Sequence record: MN047793.1
Reading direction: 5' to 3' (one strand)
DNA: 64,000 nt
Shown here: piece by piece, positions 33,820 to 51,601 of the stretch
Layout: each line of letters opens with the position of its first letter
Numbering within the stretch: the first letter of the stretch is position 1
Position numbers and translations under genes: made by a program
Notes under the pieces: generated by a model
The model's input: only the letters and a program-made list of their open reading frames with translations
What the model was told of the DNA's origin: nothing
The model's database searches: none

Positions 33820-33915
33820 GGGGAGTTAGCTCAGTTGGTAGAGCATCGGGCAATAAACCGGCCGGTTTGCTAGAAGTCCCGAGGGTCGATGGTTCGAGAC
33901 CATCACTCCCCACCA
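33820..33915 (+). ncRNA. tRNA-like RNA with a 27-nt anticodon loop
   Basis: GGGGAGT/ACTCCCC-A-CCA, canonical D and T arms, TCGGG/CCCGA stem enclosing 27 nt. Confidence 0.8.
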
Positions 33916-33933
33916 ATATTATCGAGATTAATA

Positions 33934-34146
33934 ATGACTTACCTTGTAAATCAACCCCTTCGCAAAGGTGATATTGTCAAGGTTGTAGGTAATAAAACTG
34001 GGGTAGACAATGCAATTGGAGTAGTTCATTATATGAACAACCTTACTGCTATTGCAACTATTGACTTTAGACGTACTCGTAAAGAATTACACATTAGTAA
34101 ATTGGAATTAATTGATAGGAAAAATAATCAATTAAATTTATTTTGA
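33934..34146 (+). CDS. Small SH3/KOW-like hypothetical protein
   Basis: LRKGDIVKV..G.V. Confidence 0.55.
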   Translation: MTYLVNQPLRKGDIVKVVGNKTGVDNAIGVVHYMNNLTAIATIDFRRTRKELHISKLELIDRKNNQLNLF

Positions 34147-34254
34147 CAATTTAATACAGAAACACTAAATAAGAATTATGAACAAACTTTATTACAAACG
34201 ATATTATAAAAAGCTTCCGTAAGGATTGCGTACGTTTGTATGCGGTCCTGCAAC

Positions 34255-34330
34255 GGGACCGTAGCTCAATGGTTAGAGCATTCGCCTCTTAAGCGACAGG
34301 TTGTGAGTTCGAGTCTCACCGGTCCCACCA
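34255..34330 (+). tRNA. tRNA-Lys(CTT)
   Basis: Loop CTCTTAA, CCA. Confidence 0.9.
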
Positions 34331-34352
34331 AATTCCACCCAAAGATACCACC

Positions 34353-34592
34353 ATGTATACACTAGAACAGTTAGCGCTTTTTGATAGATGCTTGTTCCCT
34401 GGAGATTTTCAGACTCAGTTGATGAATGTTGGTATGTCTGGGTTCCAAGCAGCTGTGATTAGTGGATTCATAGAATCGAATCGACGTAAGGGTAACATGG
34501 TAGGAATTATTCAAGTGTATCAAGAATTTATCGATAGTGAAGAAATAACCAAGGCAATCGATGCCGTTGTAAGTGAGTTCGTAAACAAGTAA
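34353..34592 (+). CDS. Hypothetical protein
   Basis: 79-aa ORF between tRNAs. Confidence 0.55.
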   Translation: MYTLEQLALFDRCLFPGDFQTQLMNVGMSGFQAAVISGFIESNRRKGNMVGIIQVYQEFIDSEEITKAIDAVVSEFVNK

Positions 34593-34599
34593 AGAATAA

Positions 34600-34675
34600 G
34601 GGACGGTAGCTCAGTCGGTAGAGCAGGAGACTTTTAATCTCTTGGTCGTGGGTTCGAATCCCACCCGTCCCACCA
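34600..34675 (+). tRNA. tRNA-Lys(TTT)
   Basis: Loop CTTTTAA, CCA. Confidence 0.95.
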
Positions 34676-34764
34676 GTTTCTTGCAAGAAGAAAGCTCGTG
34701 ACCCTGCGTAAGACTGGGGCACCGTATCAAGAGGGGTACAAGTCCTCAAGTCTTACTCAAATTC

Positions 34765-34851
34765 GGATGAGTATGCAAGCGGTCAAAGCTCGGGGACTGT
34801 AAATCCTCTCCCTTAACGGGTTCGTAGGTTCAAATCCTACTTCATCCACCA
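34765..34851 (+). tRNA. tRNA-Tyr(GTA)
   Basis: Type II, loop CTGTAAA, CCA. Confidence 0.92.
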
Positions 34852-34936
34852 AATCAGAAGTCAAGTATCGAAAGGTGCTTGACTTTTTTATTTTCTATCG
34901 TTATAATTTAAATATCACTCAACTAGGAAATTTTAC

Positions 34937-35332
34937 ATGGGCACTCGGTCTACCACTCTCATCACTCTTGATGGCGAACCTCTGGTCAAGTTGTACCGTC
35001 AATACGATGGGTACCCCTCCAGACATGGTTCGGAACTCGCTGAATTCATGGATGGTTTCACCTATGTAAATGGTATTAGCCGTGATATTACCGGTAAGAT
35101 TGCCAATGGCGTTGGCTGCTTTGCGGCTCAGTTGATTAAGCACTTCAAGAAGGATGCTGGTGGGGTGTATATCATCCCGATGACATCAGGCGGTCAAGAT
35201 TTCGACTATGTGATCAAATTTGTCACTGTCGATGAAGGGTTTGAATATCTGGAAGCACTGGATACGATTGAAATTGTGGACCACTTCTCCGGTAATCTCG
35301 TTGAATTCACGGAGTTTTGTAGCAAAGATTGA
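34937..35332 (+). CDS. Conserved phage hypothetical protein
   Basis: MGTRS..LYRQYDGYP..G. Confidence 0.75.
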   Translation: MGTRSTTLITLDGEPLVKLYRQYDGYPSRHGSELAEFMDGFTYVNGISRDITGKIANGVGCFAAQLIKHFKKDAGGVYIIPMTSGGQDFDYVIKFVTVDEGFEYLEALDTIEIVDHFSGNLVEFTEFCSKD

Positions 35333-35580
35333 CTTGACTTCTTTCGTTTTCGTGTTATAATTTACTAATAGTTAATAAGGGAGTAGTCATGAGCAATGAA
35401 TTTATTCTTTCCCAGATGGAATACTACAAGAACAACTTGAACTGTGGTCCGTCACGTGACTGGAACCTGATTTCTGGCCTGTATCAGCATTATCGTAGCG
35501 TAGCAGTGGCCCGTGGTTTGATTGCTTGACTTCTTTCGTTTTAGTGTTATAATTTATGCATACCAACCGGAGATACTGAC

Positions 35581-35829
35581 ATGGGTTACTACAAAGATAA
35601 TCAAGGCATTGACTGTTTCAGCCCGGATAACACCGAAAATACATTGTATATCGAGATAGGCAACGGTGAAAAAAGTGCAGATGCACTTACGGAAAGTATT
35701 CACGAACATTTCGGCGATATCGGTAATGCGTACAGCATTTCTGCCGAAAAGATTCATACCCGTTGCCTTGGGTATGACCTGTATGATTCCAGTGATTACG
35801 ATATGTTCCTTATTATTACGAAGGATTGA
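35581..35829 (+). CDS. Hypothetical protein
   Basis: GGAG RBS, own promoter. Confidence 0.65.
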   Translation: MGYYKDNQGIDCFSPDNTENTLYIEIGNGEKSADALTESIHEHFGDIGNAYSISAEKIHTRCLGYDLYDSSDYDMFLIITKD

Positions 35830-49691: not shown

Positions 49692-49694
49692 TAT

Positions 49695-49770
49695 TGGACT
49701 GTAGCTCAGGGGTTAGAGCGTCCGGCTGATAACCGGGAGGTCGATGGTTCGAAACCATCTAGTCCAACCA
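49695..49770 (+). tRNA. tRNA-Ile(GAT)
   Basis: Loop CTGATAA. Confidence 0.95.
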
Positions 49771-49926
49771 AATTCGCTTGACAAATCGTAAAATTAGTCT
49801 ATAATTGGCTAATCACTTAAAAAGTTCTCGGACTTATAACCGAGTGGTGGAGGCGACTGCTAGGAAACTAGTGTACCGCCCTGGTCCGGTAGGGGACTTG
49901 AAAGTTCCTACCAAAATTTGAGGTTT

Positions 49927-50003
49927 ACGGGTGTAACCGCCAACGCTACGAACGTTGAGTCAGGTAATGGATGAAAATGCAGGTTCGACCCCTGCCACCC
50001 GTG
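49927..50003 (+). ncRNA. D-armless/rearranged tRNA-Arg(ACG)-like RNA
   Basis: ACGGGTG/CACCCGT; CAACG-CTACGAA-CGTTG directly after a 7-nt linker; GCAGG-TTCGACC-CCTGC. Confidence 0.65.
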
Positions 50004-50153
50004 CATTAGAGCACTATGGTAATGACTAGACCGGCCACCAGAATTGCGCAAGAAGAGTCGAACTAGTGACAGCGGGAGAGTGCCGCACAATATTAACAGG
50101 AGAACATCATGTCTAACCTTATGCTGTAACGTAACACCCAACTAAAGGAAAAC

Positions 50154-50576
50154 ATGATGGAAACAGTAACCCCGCTACAAAATGAATGGCTACGTAAGCT
50201 CGTACCAGATGAATTCTCCGATGTAGACTACCTCTTCGAAACAGTACTCTTCGAAGGACTAATCTTCTTCTGGGAAAAGGATAGAGGCCTAGAGACCTTA
50301 GAGTTCAACGCCGACCCCCAATCCTGGGAAGATTCGAACTGCGATGGCTGGTCACAGGAAAGAGTAGATTGTTTCGAAGCAATGAAAGCTGCGTATGAAT
50401 GGGCTAAAGCGCGAGACTCAACCGAGCCGCAACCCCCACCATACGAATTGGTACGCGATAAAGAGCAATACATGAAGTTGGCAGATGTATACCAACAAGA
50501 CCTCCAGAAATGGGATGCAGAGAAAGATTTACACGTACTAAATATCGTAAAATACCGTAAGTACCTGTGGTCATAA
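50154..50576 (+). CDS. Hypothetical protein
   Basis: AAGGA RBS, 140 aa. Confidence 0.7.
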   Translation: MMETVTPLQNEWLRKLVPDEFSDVDYLFETVLFEGLIFFWEKDRGLETLEFNADPQSWEDSNCDGWSQERVDCFEAMKAAYEWAKARDSTEPQPPPYELVRDKEQYMKLADVYQQDLQKWDAEKDLHVLNIVKYRKYLWS

Positions 50577-50650
50577 TCTAAAGGATATAACATGAACGTA
50601 TATGAGGGCTATTTCAAGGGTTAAGTTACTTCAAAAAGGAGACTTAACAA

Positions 50651-51334
50651 ATGAAATACAAAACAGTAGAAACCGTTCCGTTTAAGACCACCTACATGCT
50701 TGTGAGTCGTTATCACAAGAAACAATATGGTCCGTTCGATAGCATCACTGAAGTAAAGGTTTTCCACCGAACATTAAATTGGTGGTACAATCCCTTCATT
50801 GATAAAGTCGAACTTACGGAAAAGGAACAACGTCATTTTAATTTTCTGAAAAGCATCCTCCGTGTAGAGGAAGTTTATCGCCTTGAACACCAGTATTGCA
50901 TTACCGATTTATACGGAAATGTAATACCGATTGCCGAGGTAAATGCTGCCGCTGGTGGTCGAACTTACCGAAATCATAACTGGGAAGTTCGAGAACTCAA
51001 ATGGGACCAAACCGTCCAACGCTTGGTGAAAGTCAAGGGTGATGGTAAGAAGATTAAAAAGGATTGGGCGTACACAAATAACGGTGGTTATGGGTTTGGC
51101 CGTTATTGTGAATATGCAAACCGTGCAGTAGGTTCCATCCGTTACGTCCGTACACAGGCAGAGCGTCGTGCAAGCGCTGCTCATGATGCTGATTACGGGC
51201 AGGGTCTGGTTCGTGCTGCACGTCGAGGACGCCACCTTCCACATTCTTGGGATGACCCACGTTGTGGAATGTACGACCTGCAAATCTGCTGGAAGCACAG
51301 CACGAAGCGTCGTAAGCAGTGGATTCCTAAATAA
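50651..51334 (+). CDS. Conserved phage hypothetical protein
   Basis: C-terminal R.TQAERR..R..R.LP.SWDD..CWK..TKRRKQW. Confidence 0.75.
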   Translation: MKYKTVETVPFKTTYMLVSRYHKKQYGPFDSITEVKVFHRTLNWWYNPFIDKVELTEKEQRHFNFLKSILRVEEVYRLEHQYCITDLYGNVIPIAEVNAAAGGRTYRNHNWEVRELKWDQTVQRLVKVKGDGKKIKKDWAYTNNGGYGFGRYCEYANRAVGSIRYVRTQAERRASAAHDADYGQGLVRAARRGRHLPHSWDDPRCGMYDLQICWKHSTKRRKQWIPK

Positions 51335-51340
51335 GAATGA

Positions 51341-51416
51341 GGGGCCTTAGCTCAGCTGGGAGAGCGTCGCACTTGCACTGCGAAGGTCATCGGTTCGAAC
51401 CCGATAGGCTCCACCA
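51341..51416 (+). tRNA. tRNA-Ala(TGC)
   Basis: G3:U70, loop CTTGCAC. Confidence 0.95.
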
Positions 51417-51466
51417 AAAAGTGCTTGACAGATTTAAAGTAATCTGTCATTCTATATCTACAGTTT

Positions 51467-51541
51467 GGCCGGTTAGCTCAGTGGTAGAGCGTCTCCTTTA
51501 CACGGAGAGGGTCGGGGGTTCGAAACCCTCACCGGCTACCA
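51467..51541 (+). tRNA. tRNA-Val(TAC)
   Basis: Loop TTTACAC. Confidence 0.95.
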
Positions 51542-51550
51542 ATTTTCTAT

Positions 51551-51601
51551 GTCGATGTTGGGAAACGCCAGGGGCGCGTACCCCTGCCCACATCGGCTCC
51601 A
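51551..51601 (+). ncRNA. CCA-ended minihelix-like RNA
   Basis: GTCGATGT/ACATCGGC-T-CCA with inner CAGGGG/CCCCTG hairpin, between two tRNAs. Confidence 0.5.

Follow-up and report, generated by a model that had tools for sequence, protein, structure and literature searches.

A putative rewired tRNA-Arg and non-decoding tRNA look-alikes in the tRNA island of Xanthomonas phage Xoo-sp13

The tRNA island of the Xanthomonas jumbo phage Xoo-sp13 holds, among 25 canonical tRNA genes, a gene at 49927-50003 that is best read as a working tRNA-Arg(ICG) supplying the CGN codon box, not as a decoy, and several further tRNA-shaped RNAs that have no usable anticodon loop. The window analysed here comprises bases 1-64000 of the phage genome (MN047793.1, 309 kb; 100% identity), the record of which carries coding sequence (CDS) features only and zero annotated RNA genes. 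A first-pass annotation of this DNA had proposed one family of RNAs built on a tRNA scaffold. The observation of tRNA-shaped RNAs has proved largely real and well above chance, and the supposed single family has separated into several unrelated lineages plus plain hairpins. In the explanation that we favour, with moderate confidence, the odd RNAs fall into at least three kinds: a rewired tRNA-Arg, non-decoding look-alikes, and decaying or neofunctionalised tRNA copies, to which some plain hairpins are added.

The tRNA order of Xoo-sp13 is kept in the jumbo phages XacN1 (AP018399; locus L003 below) and Stenotrophomonas phage RAS14 (L008), of which CM1 is a near-twin. A metagenome fragment of 1.6 kb (L042) provides a fourth, partial relative of the island, and an IMG/VR contig (L228) served as a further comparator. 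The odd RNAs of Xoo-sp13 are 81-85% identical to those of XacN1, a level that matches true tRNAs, in contrast to a neighbouring protein that is 54% identical and to intergenic DNA that is unalignable. Because the orthologs in XacN1, RAS14 and the IMG/VR and metagenome contigs keep their stems via compensatory changes, comparison supports the reading of the odd island RNAs as real, selected, tRNA-derived genes rather than products of simple decay, as had been argued at first from their intact stems. Covariation is present among homologs of the 49927, 33820 and 38349 RNAs, and among the Rfam families it is that of tRNA alone to which items of the original list match. The published description of XacN1 counted 29 tRNA-like sequences per terminal repeat, and in it the transfer-messenger RNA (tmRNA) is unmentioned and the odd tRNA-shaped RNAs of the island are undescribed (PMC5852040).

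A putative tRNA-Arg family lacking the usual D arm

The most solid new item of the analysis, as judged from sequence comparison, is the family to which the gene at 49927-50003 (+ strand) belongs, a non-canonical tRNA-Arg(ACG) recognised through homolog covariation and a covariance model. Its 7-bp acceptor stem (7/7) is followed by U8 and A9 and then by ACC, which pairs with GGU located 3' of the anticodon arm, and the anticodon arm itself has a 5-bp stem and the canonical loop CUACGAA. The acceptor, anticodon and T arms are thus all present, and the D arm is absent, as the first-pass annotation had recognised: just 7 nucleotides (nt) separate the acceptor and anticodon stems. The variable position is occupied by the D-loop-like AAUGGAUGAAAAU, in which GG is followed by A in the manner of G18 G19 A20. 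The T arm and G73 follow, and the gene ends in GCAT, CCA being not encoded. The gene gave no tRNA match in Rfam at E<=10 and is missed by ARAGORN in its ordinary mode, only the mitochondrial mode calling its anticodon arm as Arg(ACG); it is unannotated in Xoo-sp13, XacN1, RAS14, DLP_6 and two rhizobial phages. In the XacN1 copy, which is 85% identical, the four inner hairpin pairs have all been swapped (AACG/CGUU to GUGC/GCAC) around an unchanged CUACGAA loop.

Homologs were gathered by exact-pattern scans of IMG/VR, by BLAST of sequenced phages and by a scan of 185,579 species genomes, and 25 distinct sequences were parsed. Their sources, 8 sequenced phages or bacterial contigs together with IMG/VR, comprise phages of Xanthomonas, Stenotrophomonas, Rhizobium and Mesorhizobium, uncultured viral contigs and three Rhizobiales genomes; as the latter are the only 3 of the 185,579 species genomes to hold a member, the family is essentially phage-borne. 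Its common plan opens with a 7-bp acceptor, UA and a short strand (ACC, UCC, CGG or CUC), continues through a 5-bp anticodon stem, a canonical 7-nt loop and a linker of 4-8 nt, and closes with the complementary strand (GGU, CCG or GAG), the segment UAAYGGA(K)G...AU and the T arm, after which come the 3' strand of the acceptor, N73 and CCA. The GGA segment is at least 90% conserved across the family, with an extra hairpin on its 3' side in some members (DLP_6, L006, L023), and CCA is encoded in 23 of the 25. Alignment of 21 of these sequences, a number that later finds raised to the total of 25, showed 95.5% of cells paired and double changes in 16/20 pairs; none of 500 shuffles matched this, and slid controls were 32-42% paired. 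The D-like helix itself covaries between the ACG and UCU types, being CGG/CCG twice and CUC/GAG once in UCU-type members. A covariance model separates the family cleanly, with 26 family matches at 52 bits or more and ordinary tRNAs at 38 bits or less.

The anticodons of the family are exclusively those of arginine (ACG in 18 members, UCU in four, GCG and UCG in one each, with one further row mis-parsed), and the GCG, UCG and UCU versions stand together as a full Arg set on contig L006/L007. The 25 canonical tRNAs of Xoo-sp13 leave the CGN codon box alone uncovered, and CGN is likewise the sole uncovered box, filled by the rewired tRNA-Arg, in XacN1 and RAS14. Across the 52 CDS of the window, CGT and CGC together make up 40 per 1000 codons, or 73% of Arg codons. 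It is because CGN is otherwise uncovered, and because CGU and CGC dominate the Arg codons, that 49927 is read as the tRNA-Arg(ICG) of the phage.

How such a molecule might work can be outlined from its layout. With regard to topology and tertiary contacts, we infer that the 3' strand of the D stem and the D loop, with the equivalents of G18 G19 A20, have been placed after the anticodon arm; the 2-3-bp ACC/GGU helix would stack on the anticodon stem, and the GG-containing loop would still reach the T loop. A perfect consensus promoter, TTGACA-16-TATAAT, lies at 49778-49805 (+ strand) and would drive a leader of about 115 nt and then the tRNA-Arg. Following transcription from this promoter, the RNA would be cut by RNase P and receive CCA from a host enzyme, be charged by arginyl-tRNA synthetase (ArgRS) via C35, G36 and the A20-like base, and be deaminated to ICG, reading CGU, CGC and CGA. 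The leader (49806-49926) is structured, with hairpins CUCGG...CCGAG and GGUAGG...CCUACC, and parts of it are conserved in XacN1 (L003 18395-18429). The tRNA island also encodes, at 43296-43715, a 139-aa protein with a cytidine/dCMP-deaminase fold; it was considered as a TadA for A34 editing and rejected, its best matches being of the dCMP deaminase/ComEB type.

Recognition of tRNA-Arg by ArgRS depends on an Arg anticodon with C35 and G36 or U36, an A20-type base after G18 G19, and A or G at position 73. Canonical tRNA-Arg carries A73 or G73, and N73 is G in both Xoo-sp13 and XacN1. Some features nevertheless weigh against a decoding role: U73 is found in 15 of the 25 family members, unlike canonical tRNA-Arg, the Xoo-sp13 copy does not encode its CCA, and in 9/21 sequences the D-like helix does not form its third pair. 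In addition, contig L005 has a canonical tRNA-Arg(ACG) beside the odd form, which is therefore not always the sole CGN reader. The frequent U73, the unusual core topology and the canonical gene right beside the odd form on that one contig would all suit a family of non-decoding tRNA-Arg mimics, for instance baits for ArgRS or for a host nuclease directed at tRNA-Arg. We regard such mimicry as distinctly improbable, given that four different Arg anticodons are each presented in a canonical loop, that the GCG, UCG and UCU versions occur as a set on one contig, and that in Xoo-sp13, XacN1 and RAS14 the gene fills the only uncovered box, to which the commonest Arg codons of the phage belong.

This putative working tRNA-Arg can be compared with the D-armless mitochondrial tRNAs, such as metazoan mt-tRNA-Ser(AGY), which it resembles solely in having no conventional D stem-loop. 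The 49927 type differs from them in keeping a perfect bacterial T arm and a GG-A segment moved 3' of the anticodon arm, in being phage-borne and arginine-specific, and in showing no sign of general sequence erosion. A literature search found no paper describing a D-armless or rewired phage tRNA-Arg, a negative that does not prove absence.

tRNA-shaped RNAs that lack a usable anticodon loop

Within the window, ARAGORN made 26 tRNA calls between 32648 and 52917, every one on the + strand, and an Rfam search returned the same 26 together with a two-piece tmRNA at 39030-39373; the call of Tyr(ata) at 33820 is spurious. Shuffled sequence would be expected to contain 0.38 copies of the T-loop motif GGTTCRANYCC, and the window contains 24. 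A stricter scan for T arms (5-bp stem and TTCRANN loop) found 32 on the + strand and one on the - strand, seven of them, all on the + strand, beyond the ARAGORN tRNAs (37603, 38445, 38795, 39744, 40532, 47637 and 49979). Outside the normal tRNAs, an acceptor-like stem with a T arm is present at 33820, 37535, 38349, 38670 and 49927, as first described; the hairpins at 34705 and 51551 show no T-loop consensus, and the 5' end proposed at 40387 is not supported. Six of the eight items originally listed show the acceptor and T-arm shape where it had been placed, and five of the eight have the NCCA said to be usual. The list had also missed a tRNA-like gene at 47563-47664 (Rfam tRNA, 35.3 bits) and a weak T-arm element at 39718-39767.

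Judged on their predicted structures, the RNAs at 33820, 37535, 38349 and 38670 are non-decoding tRNA look-alikes of several lineages. The features of a decoding anticodon arm (5-bp stem, 7-nt loop, U33 and a purine at 37) are found in 49927 (CUACGAA) and in a degenerate tRNA at 40487 (CUCAUAA), but not in 33820, 37535, 38349 or 47563, the last of which has A33. A T arm with a 5-bp stem and UUCRANY loop is present in the tRNA-shaped items, with a 4-bp stem in 40487, and is lacking in 34705 and 51551. The D arm is present in 33820, 37535 and, in D-like form, 38670, displaced in 38349, expanded in 47563 and absent from 49927. The gathering score of the Rfam tRNA model (RF00005, 29 bits) is reached by 33820 (57) and 47563 (35.3), 40487 (27.4) and 38349 (24.8) falling under it. 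Five of the genes (33820, 37535, 38349, 40487 and 47563) encode CCA, whereas 38670 and 49927 do not.

The RNA at 33820-33915 (+ strand) has normal acceptor, D and T arms and ends in ACCA. Below its 7-bp acceptor, an anticodon stem UCGGG/CCCGA closes a loop of 27 nt, within which a second stem, AAACC/GGUUU, carries a GGCC tetraloop. The internal loop AAU / AAGU sets this stem off, and the anticodon domain offers no loop of 7 nt that contains U33. The claim that the anticodon domain is replaced holds for 33820, though not for 38349, in which an insert of about 46 nt precedes the D arm. Orthologs of 33820 occur in XacN1 (L003:1283-1391, with the same promoter) and on the IMG/VR contig L228 (4677-4767), the latter version recurring on other IMG/VR contigs of the same group, which look like smaller, temperate phages; it sits close to a CI-type repressor, within the early region. 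All three share the cloverleaf, the two-stem lower arm and the conserved AAU / AAGU internal loop, with compensatory change at 16/27 consensus pairs and Rfam tRNA scores of 57 and 45.6 bits.

A second RNA, at 37535-37631 (+ strand), was recognised by sequence reading and the T-arm scan. It shares with 33820 the identical 5' strand GGGGAGT, as had been noticed in the first reading, and the first ~30 nt of the two are about 75% alike, which makes them paralogs. Each has its own sigma-70-type promoter ending about 10 nt upstream, at 33781-33809 for 33820 (+ strand; TTGACA-17-TAGTAT, conserved in XacN1) and at 37497-37524 for 37535 (consensus-like). The 37535 RNA has an 8-bp acceptor (8/8; G1-C72, G2-C71, G3.U70, G4-C69), A73, CCA, a 5-bp T stem, a 6-bp D stem (5/6) with a 4-5-nt loop, and an irregular anticodon-side hairpin with an 8-nt loop; it has no usable anticodon loop and no tRNA match in Rfam at E<=10. 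Its alanine set with G3.U70 matches that of the phage tRNA-Ala (51341) and, as read from the sequence, of the phage tmRNA; 37535 carries the full alanine acceptor identity and would probably be alanylated.

The remaining look-alikes lie between 37979 and 39878, where there is no annotated CDS and one strong promoter stands at the head. This promoter, TTGACA-16-TAAAGT with an upstream TG (37986-38013, + strand; conserved in XacN1), leads a gene-free cluster of non-coding RNAs at 38020-39800 that comprises, in order, an RNA of about 300 nt, 38349, a long hairpin, 38670, the two tmRNA pieces and the weak T-arm element. The RNA at 38349-38472 (+ strand), supported by orthologs and by acceptor/T covariation, pairs its acceptor stem at 6/7 positions, G3.A70 being mismatched, and carries a T arm and ACCA; its ~46-nt insertion lies between position 9 and the D arm, as in XacN1. 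The XacN1 ortholog (L003:7857-7981) is expanded, and those of RAS14 (L008:3942-4015) and L042 (872-946) are unexpanded with non-canonical loops. Across these four, the G3.A70 mismatch occurs in three, CCA is encoded in all, position 73 is A except in XacN1, where it is G, and a canonical anticodon loop is missing from every one. Double changes affect 6/12 acceptor/T pairs, and pairing reaches 93.8% against 31-58% in slid controls. The unexpanded orthologs score 44.1 (RAS14) and 48.9 bits (L042) as Rfam tRNA, against 24.8 bits for 38349.

The 150-nt RNA at 38670-38819 (+ strand), 81% identical to XacN1 L003:8067-8225, combines a 7-bp Watson-Crick acceptor with a D-like arm (GCG/CGC, GG loop), an extra hairpin, a T arm and a long arm capped by a conserved 7-nt loop, CUAAACA (C37). 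Compensatory changes between the two phages fall in the acceptor stem (two) and the capped hairpin (one), and CCA is absent from both. There is no tRNA match in Rfam at E<=10. The idea that 38670 is a mini-tmRNA or belongs to the tmRNA gene was rejected, as G3.U70, CCA and a typical tag are all missing; in XacN1, the Rfam beta_tmRNA match overlaps the 38670 ortholog only via the unpaired promoter columns of the model, which hints that a conserved TACTATATAA 3' of 38670 may be the -10 region of the tmRNA. When IMG/VR was scanned with exact patterns of the 38349 and 38670 cores, nothing matched. The neighbouring protein (37667-37978) has no IMG/VR homolog, and tblastn of phages added no close relative; its two metagenome homologs lie on the L042 phage fragment and on L043, a high-GC, bacterial-looking contig.

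The two-piece (permuted) tmRNA itself (39030-39373, + strand; Rfam tmRNA_permuted, 65.7 bits) is unannotated. Its acceptor piece ends ...CAGGUCC-ACCA at 39083, its coding piece starts GGGCCUG near 39232, and its tag frame ends in translation ...NDNVDSFDFAMAA*. ARAGORN misses this tmRNA but calls the XacN1 ortholog (tag ANANTFDYALAA). The weak T-arm element on its 3' side (39718-39767, + strand) combines a 6-bp T stem, GGUUCGAAUCC and a 7-bp acceptor-like pairing with two G.U pairs; its fold has z = -0.4, and a T-arm element, at most a possible homolog, is similarly placed in XacN1 (L003:8639-8730). Several other structured stretches accompany the cluster. The non-coding RNA of about 300 nt directly behind the promoter (38020-38340) has no Rfam match, and its 5' ~90 nt (GGUGACGGCAUCGAGGCCACUCACC...ACAAUUUGAGCGG) are conserved at L003 ~7600, L008 ~4064 and L042 ~999. 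Gene-free DNA at 38478-38565 forms a hairpin of about 85 nt with a 12-bp closing stem (AUACACAUUUGC/GCAGAUGUGUAU), and 3' of the coding piece of the tmRNA lies an inverted repeat of 22 bp, near-perfect with one mismatch (39428-39539; arms 39428-39449 and 39518-39539), whose only Rfam matches are weak and miRNA-like. GOLLD RNA occurs in the same cluster of the relatives (XacN1 L003 9571-9984, 227 bits; RAS14 L008 7663-8088, 218 bits), with no Rfam match to it in the Xoo-sp13 window.

Expanded tRNA-shaped RNAs are also found at other sites in the relatives, and the phenomenon is therefore lineage-wide: XacN1 has a 150-nt RNA with an 8-bp acceptor (L003:16298-16445) and a CAU arm with an ~85-nt D-region insert (L003:10196-10343), and RAS14 a 134-nt 'tRNA-OTHER' with an insert of ~55-70 nt in the region of the anticodon arm (L008:13100-13233). 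Orthology of 37535 to the first of these was considered and set aside as suggestive only, the common 8-mer being not significant. No similarity was detected among the inserts or to other parts of the window, as a mobile insert common to the expansions would require. A tRNA-like RNA of about 70 nt is conserved in three relatives (L003:7989-8055, L008:4590-4662, L042 ~1438-1506), with an acceptor GCACAGG/(N)CUGUGC, a T arm, an internal GUCGCGCAC and no CCA; it is unrecognisable in Xoo-sp13.

The expanded RNAs had been suggested to be precursors spliced by two phage RNA ligases, of which one is confirmed in the window, an RnlA-family (T4) RNA ligase at 60046-61215 (298 bits against a cut-off of 242). 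They would then be intron-containing pre-tRNAs rejoined by this nearby ligase into decoding tRNAs, and ARAGORN, when allowed introns, does read 33820 as a tRNA-Ser(AGA) with an 18-nt intron at 32/33. Splicing of this kind is highly improbable, because this sole intron model breaks a stem pair, gives A34 and has an exon junction and anticodon that are not preserved in the XacN1 and L228 orthologs; it also provides no long variable arm for Ser identity. As long as TCGGG/CCCGA is kept, there is no contiguous deletion by which U33 would come to lie in a loop of 7 nt. In 38349 and 47563, moreover, the inserted stretches lie in the D region and not in the anticodon loop, and the phage decodes all codon boxes without the expanded RNAs.

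Another interpretation treats the look-alikes as decoys or sponges that show the upper half of a tRNA to 3'-end-modifying toxins, synthetases or the trans-translation machinery and so protect phage translation. It is in keeping with selection on the acceptor, T and D parts alongside large indels in the lower half, with the AlaRS identity set that 37535 shares with tmRNA, with the solitary 33820-like RNA that small temperate-type phages carry in their early region, near a CI-like repressor, and with the position of the island among translation-protection genes (RnlA-family ligase, SpoT-like HD hydrolase, Thg1-like gene, tmRNA and amber suppressor). We nonetheless consider it quite unlikely: it can point to no target and to no defence-related phenotype, CCA is missing from 38670 and from the L228 homolog, and a literature search gave no precedent for a phage tRNA-mimic decoy, although this is not proof of absence. 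Decoys for anticodon nucleases, one of the functions put forward at first, are not supported for the expanded RNAs, whose lack of an anticodon loop argues against such a role.

For the non-decoding look-alikes, the reading that we prefer is that the acceptor/T(/D) upper half would act as the handle through which RNase P cleaves them, their 3' ends are trimmed and CCA is added, so that they may accumulate as stable small RNAs; the lower half would be free to vary or would bear an unknown ligand site. Maturation by RNase P and 3'-end enzymes is plausible given the tRNA-like acceptor/T module, often with an encoded CCA. Within the cluster at 37986-39800, the tRNA shapes may double as cutting points that release the 38020-38340 RNA and both tmRNA pieces. 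Processing, charging, stability and such punctuation would all be properties inferred for the island RNAs from their sequences, and a number of points tell against them. Every odd RNA of the island is known here from sequence alone, the comparators for the look-alikes are few (2-4 sequences), the inserted domains of 38349 and 38670 have predicted folds that Xoo-sp13 and XacN1 do not clearly share, and the minimum-free-energy z-scores are unremarkable (-0.5 to -2.4). It is solely the layout that would suggest punctuation, and 38670, which lies ~17 nt upstream of the tmRNA acceptor piece in XacN1, is ~210 nt from it in Xoo-sp13. As 37535 has no homolog, its G3.U70 could be a coincidence.

Degenerate tRNAs, hairpins and neighbouring genes

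Two further genes look like decaying or neofunctionalised tRNA copies and are the best pseudogene candidates. The first, at 40487-40560 (+ strand), is a degenerate tRNA-like gene ending in ACCA that scores 27.4 bits as Rfam tRNA (gathering score 29), with a CUCAUAA loop (CAU), a 4-bp T stem and a 4/7 acceptor. It has no 7/7 acceptor partner upstream; the 5' boundary first placed at 40387 is no better than chance, being just a 6/7 match, of which kind about three are expected in the span, and only 40487-40560 is tRNA-like. Its positional analog in XacN1 (L003:10266-10338) scores 31.3 bits. The second, at 47563-47664 (+ strand; Rfam tRNA 35.3 bits, with relaxed filters only), has an insertion of about 25 nt in the D loop and A33 (loop CAGAUAA), and is the ortholog of a normal XacN1 tRNA-Met (L003:16078-16154); all of its stems are intact, including a 7/7 acceptor.

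The items at 34705-34759 and 51551-51601 (both + strand), first described as tRNA minihelices, are stable hairpins whose loops (TACAAGT and CGCGTA) are not T loops and which have no counterpart in XacN1 or RAS14; they are fairly likely to be plain hairpins that are not demonstrably tRNA-like. The first (z = -3.56; loop UACAAGU, no CCA) stands between tRNA-Lys and tRNA-Tyr, which abut in XacN1 and RAS14. The second (z = -3.20; loop CGCGUA) has a stem of about 17 bp followed by UCCA; no homolog of it was found, including in XacN1 and RAS14, where its site is taken by tRNA-His.

Genes such as these raise the question of whether most of the odd items are pseudogenes, that is, tRNA copies with small insertions, along with chance hairpins, still present because they are recent. 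Besides the 4/7 acceptor and sub-threshold score of 40487 and the hairpins without homologs, the change from the normal XacN1 ortholog to 47563 amounts to a D-loop insertion and a U33-to-A substitution, the insertion site varies from gene to gene, and the lineage is prone to tRNA insertions, the extra arms of its tRNA-Cys and tRNA-Asn being absent in RAS14. As a general account this is unlikely, since 33820, 38349 and 38670 are conserved like real tRNAs (against proteins at ~54%) with stems kept by compensatory changes, dedicated promoters precede 33820 and 37535, that of 33820 being conserved in XacN1, the 38349 lineage has kept acceptor, T arm and CCA in four phages without a canonical anticodon loop, and 49927 belongs to a covarying family of 26 members.

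The extra arms just mentioned are class-II-like long variable arms in tRNA-Cys (48472-48560, 89 nt) and tRNA-Asn (48765-48851, 87 nt); in XacN1 such arms are found in Cys, Asn, Thr, Gly and Lys(CUU), and the RAS14 orthologs are of normal length. An identical variable arm, AGCGAAAGCUCAUC, in Cys and Lys(CUU) of XacN1 suggests tRNA remoulding by anticodon change. An amber-suppressor tRNA (CUA; labelled 'Pyl' by ARAGORN) lies at 36791-36866, with two copies in XacN1 and one in RAS14, and gene-free DNA at 40247-40380, after tRNA-Gly, forms a region of about 130 nt with a 9-bp closing stem (UUGAUGGGU/ACCCAUCAA). The island is headed, in Xoo-sp13 and XacN1, by a gene annotated 'GTP pyrophosphokinase' (30432-31073) that matches the HD hydrolase half of RelA/SpoT only (Pfam HD_4; NCBIfam spoT_relA 3-125) and is more likely to encode a small alarmone hydrolase; a Thg1-like gene lies just beyond the window. 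These translation-maintenance neighbours (ligase, hydrolase, Thg1-like gene, tmRNA and amber suppressor) are compatible with a counter-defence role of the look-alikes.

Precedents and implications

The ends of the T4 RNAs known as RNAC and RNAD are reported to be tRNA-like and processed by RNase P. By description, these RNAs appear to be the closest precedent for the look-alikes, which likewise lie inside a phage tRNA cluster; the Xoo-sp13 RNAs differ in keeping a full T arm, often with a D arm and an encoded CCA, and in belonging to several unrelated lineages. RNAC and RNAD (species 1 and 2 RNAs) are small stable RNAs co-transcribed with phage tRNA genes, and their function has been unknown for 50 years (PMC3014915).

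Likenesses to other systems are more partial. The tRNA-like domain of tmRNA also combines an acceptor and T arm with a long helix in place of the anticodon arm and has no anticodon, and 37535 shows the G3.U70/A73 alanine identity of the phage's own tmRNA; an mRNA-like domain and a tag frame are, however, absent from the look-alikes, G3.U70 is lacking in 33820, 38349 and 38670, and the tmRNA models (RF00023, RF04321 and RF01850) match 39030-39373 only (65.7 bits). The t-elements of plant mitochondria, 3' modules of the mascRNA type and mitochondrial tRNA punctuation illustrate how an acceptor/T shape can recruit RNase P and RNase Z and define the ends of its neighbours, which fits the layout of 38349 and 38670 in their single-promoter cluster as a working principle only; the Rfam mascRNA model hit just an ordinary tRNA-His in the window (21 bits). 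YrlA contains a tRNA-like module, and a Y-RNA-like nature had been among the first suggestions; the best island match to YrlA (RF02553) reached 22.1 bits against a gathering score of 69, on tRNA-Pro/Thr, and none fell on the candidates. Bacterial tRNA-Sec shares with 37535 the 8+5 acceptor/T geometry and the 6-bp D stem. Identification of 37535 as tRNA-Sec was rejected (RF01852, 20.9 bits against a gathering score of 47; no UCA anticodon).

A tentative hypothesis, which we put forward as possible rather than probable, is that phages carry an undescribed class of elongator tRNA, Arg-specific and with a locally permuted cloverleaf, beside non-decoding bodies, one of them with Ala identity, that act as counter-defence decoys or processing handles. 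If the rewiring served to escape a host factor that recognises the body of tRNA-Arg, it would constitute a new form of immune evasion at the tRNA level. A working tRNA of the bacterial world without a conventional D arm would widen the known limits of tRNA architecture outside mitochondria, and the rewired tRNA-Arg would offer a natural test case for what ArgRS, RNase P, EF-Tu and the ribosome can tolerate. Phage tRNA complements would also be under-counted, as the standard gene finders miss the rewired form. The conserved non-decoding bodies, for their part, revive the 50-year-old question of the role of T4 RNAC and RNAD, and their several lineages, their promoters and their defined neighbourhood (tmRNA, RnlA ligase and SpoT-like hydrolase, with GOLLD in the relatives) may now open that question to experiment.

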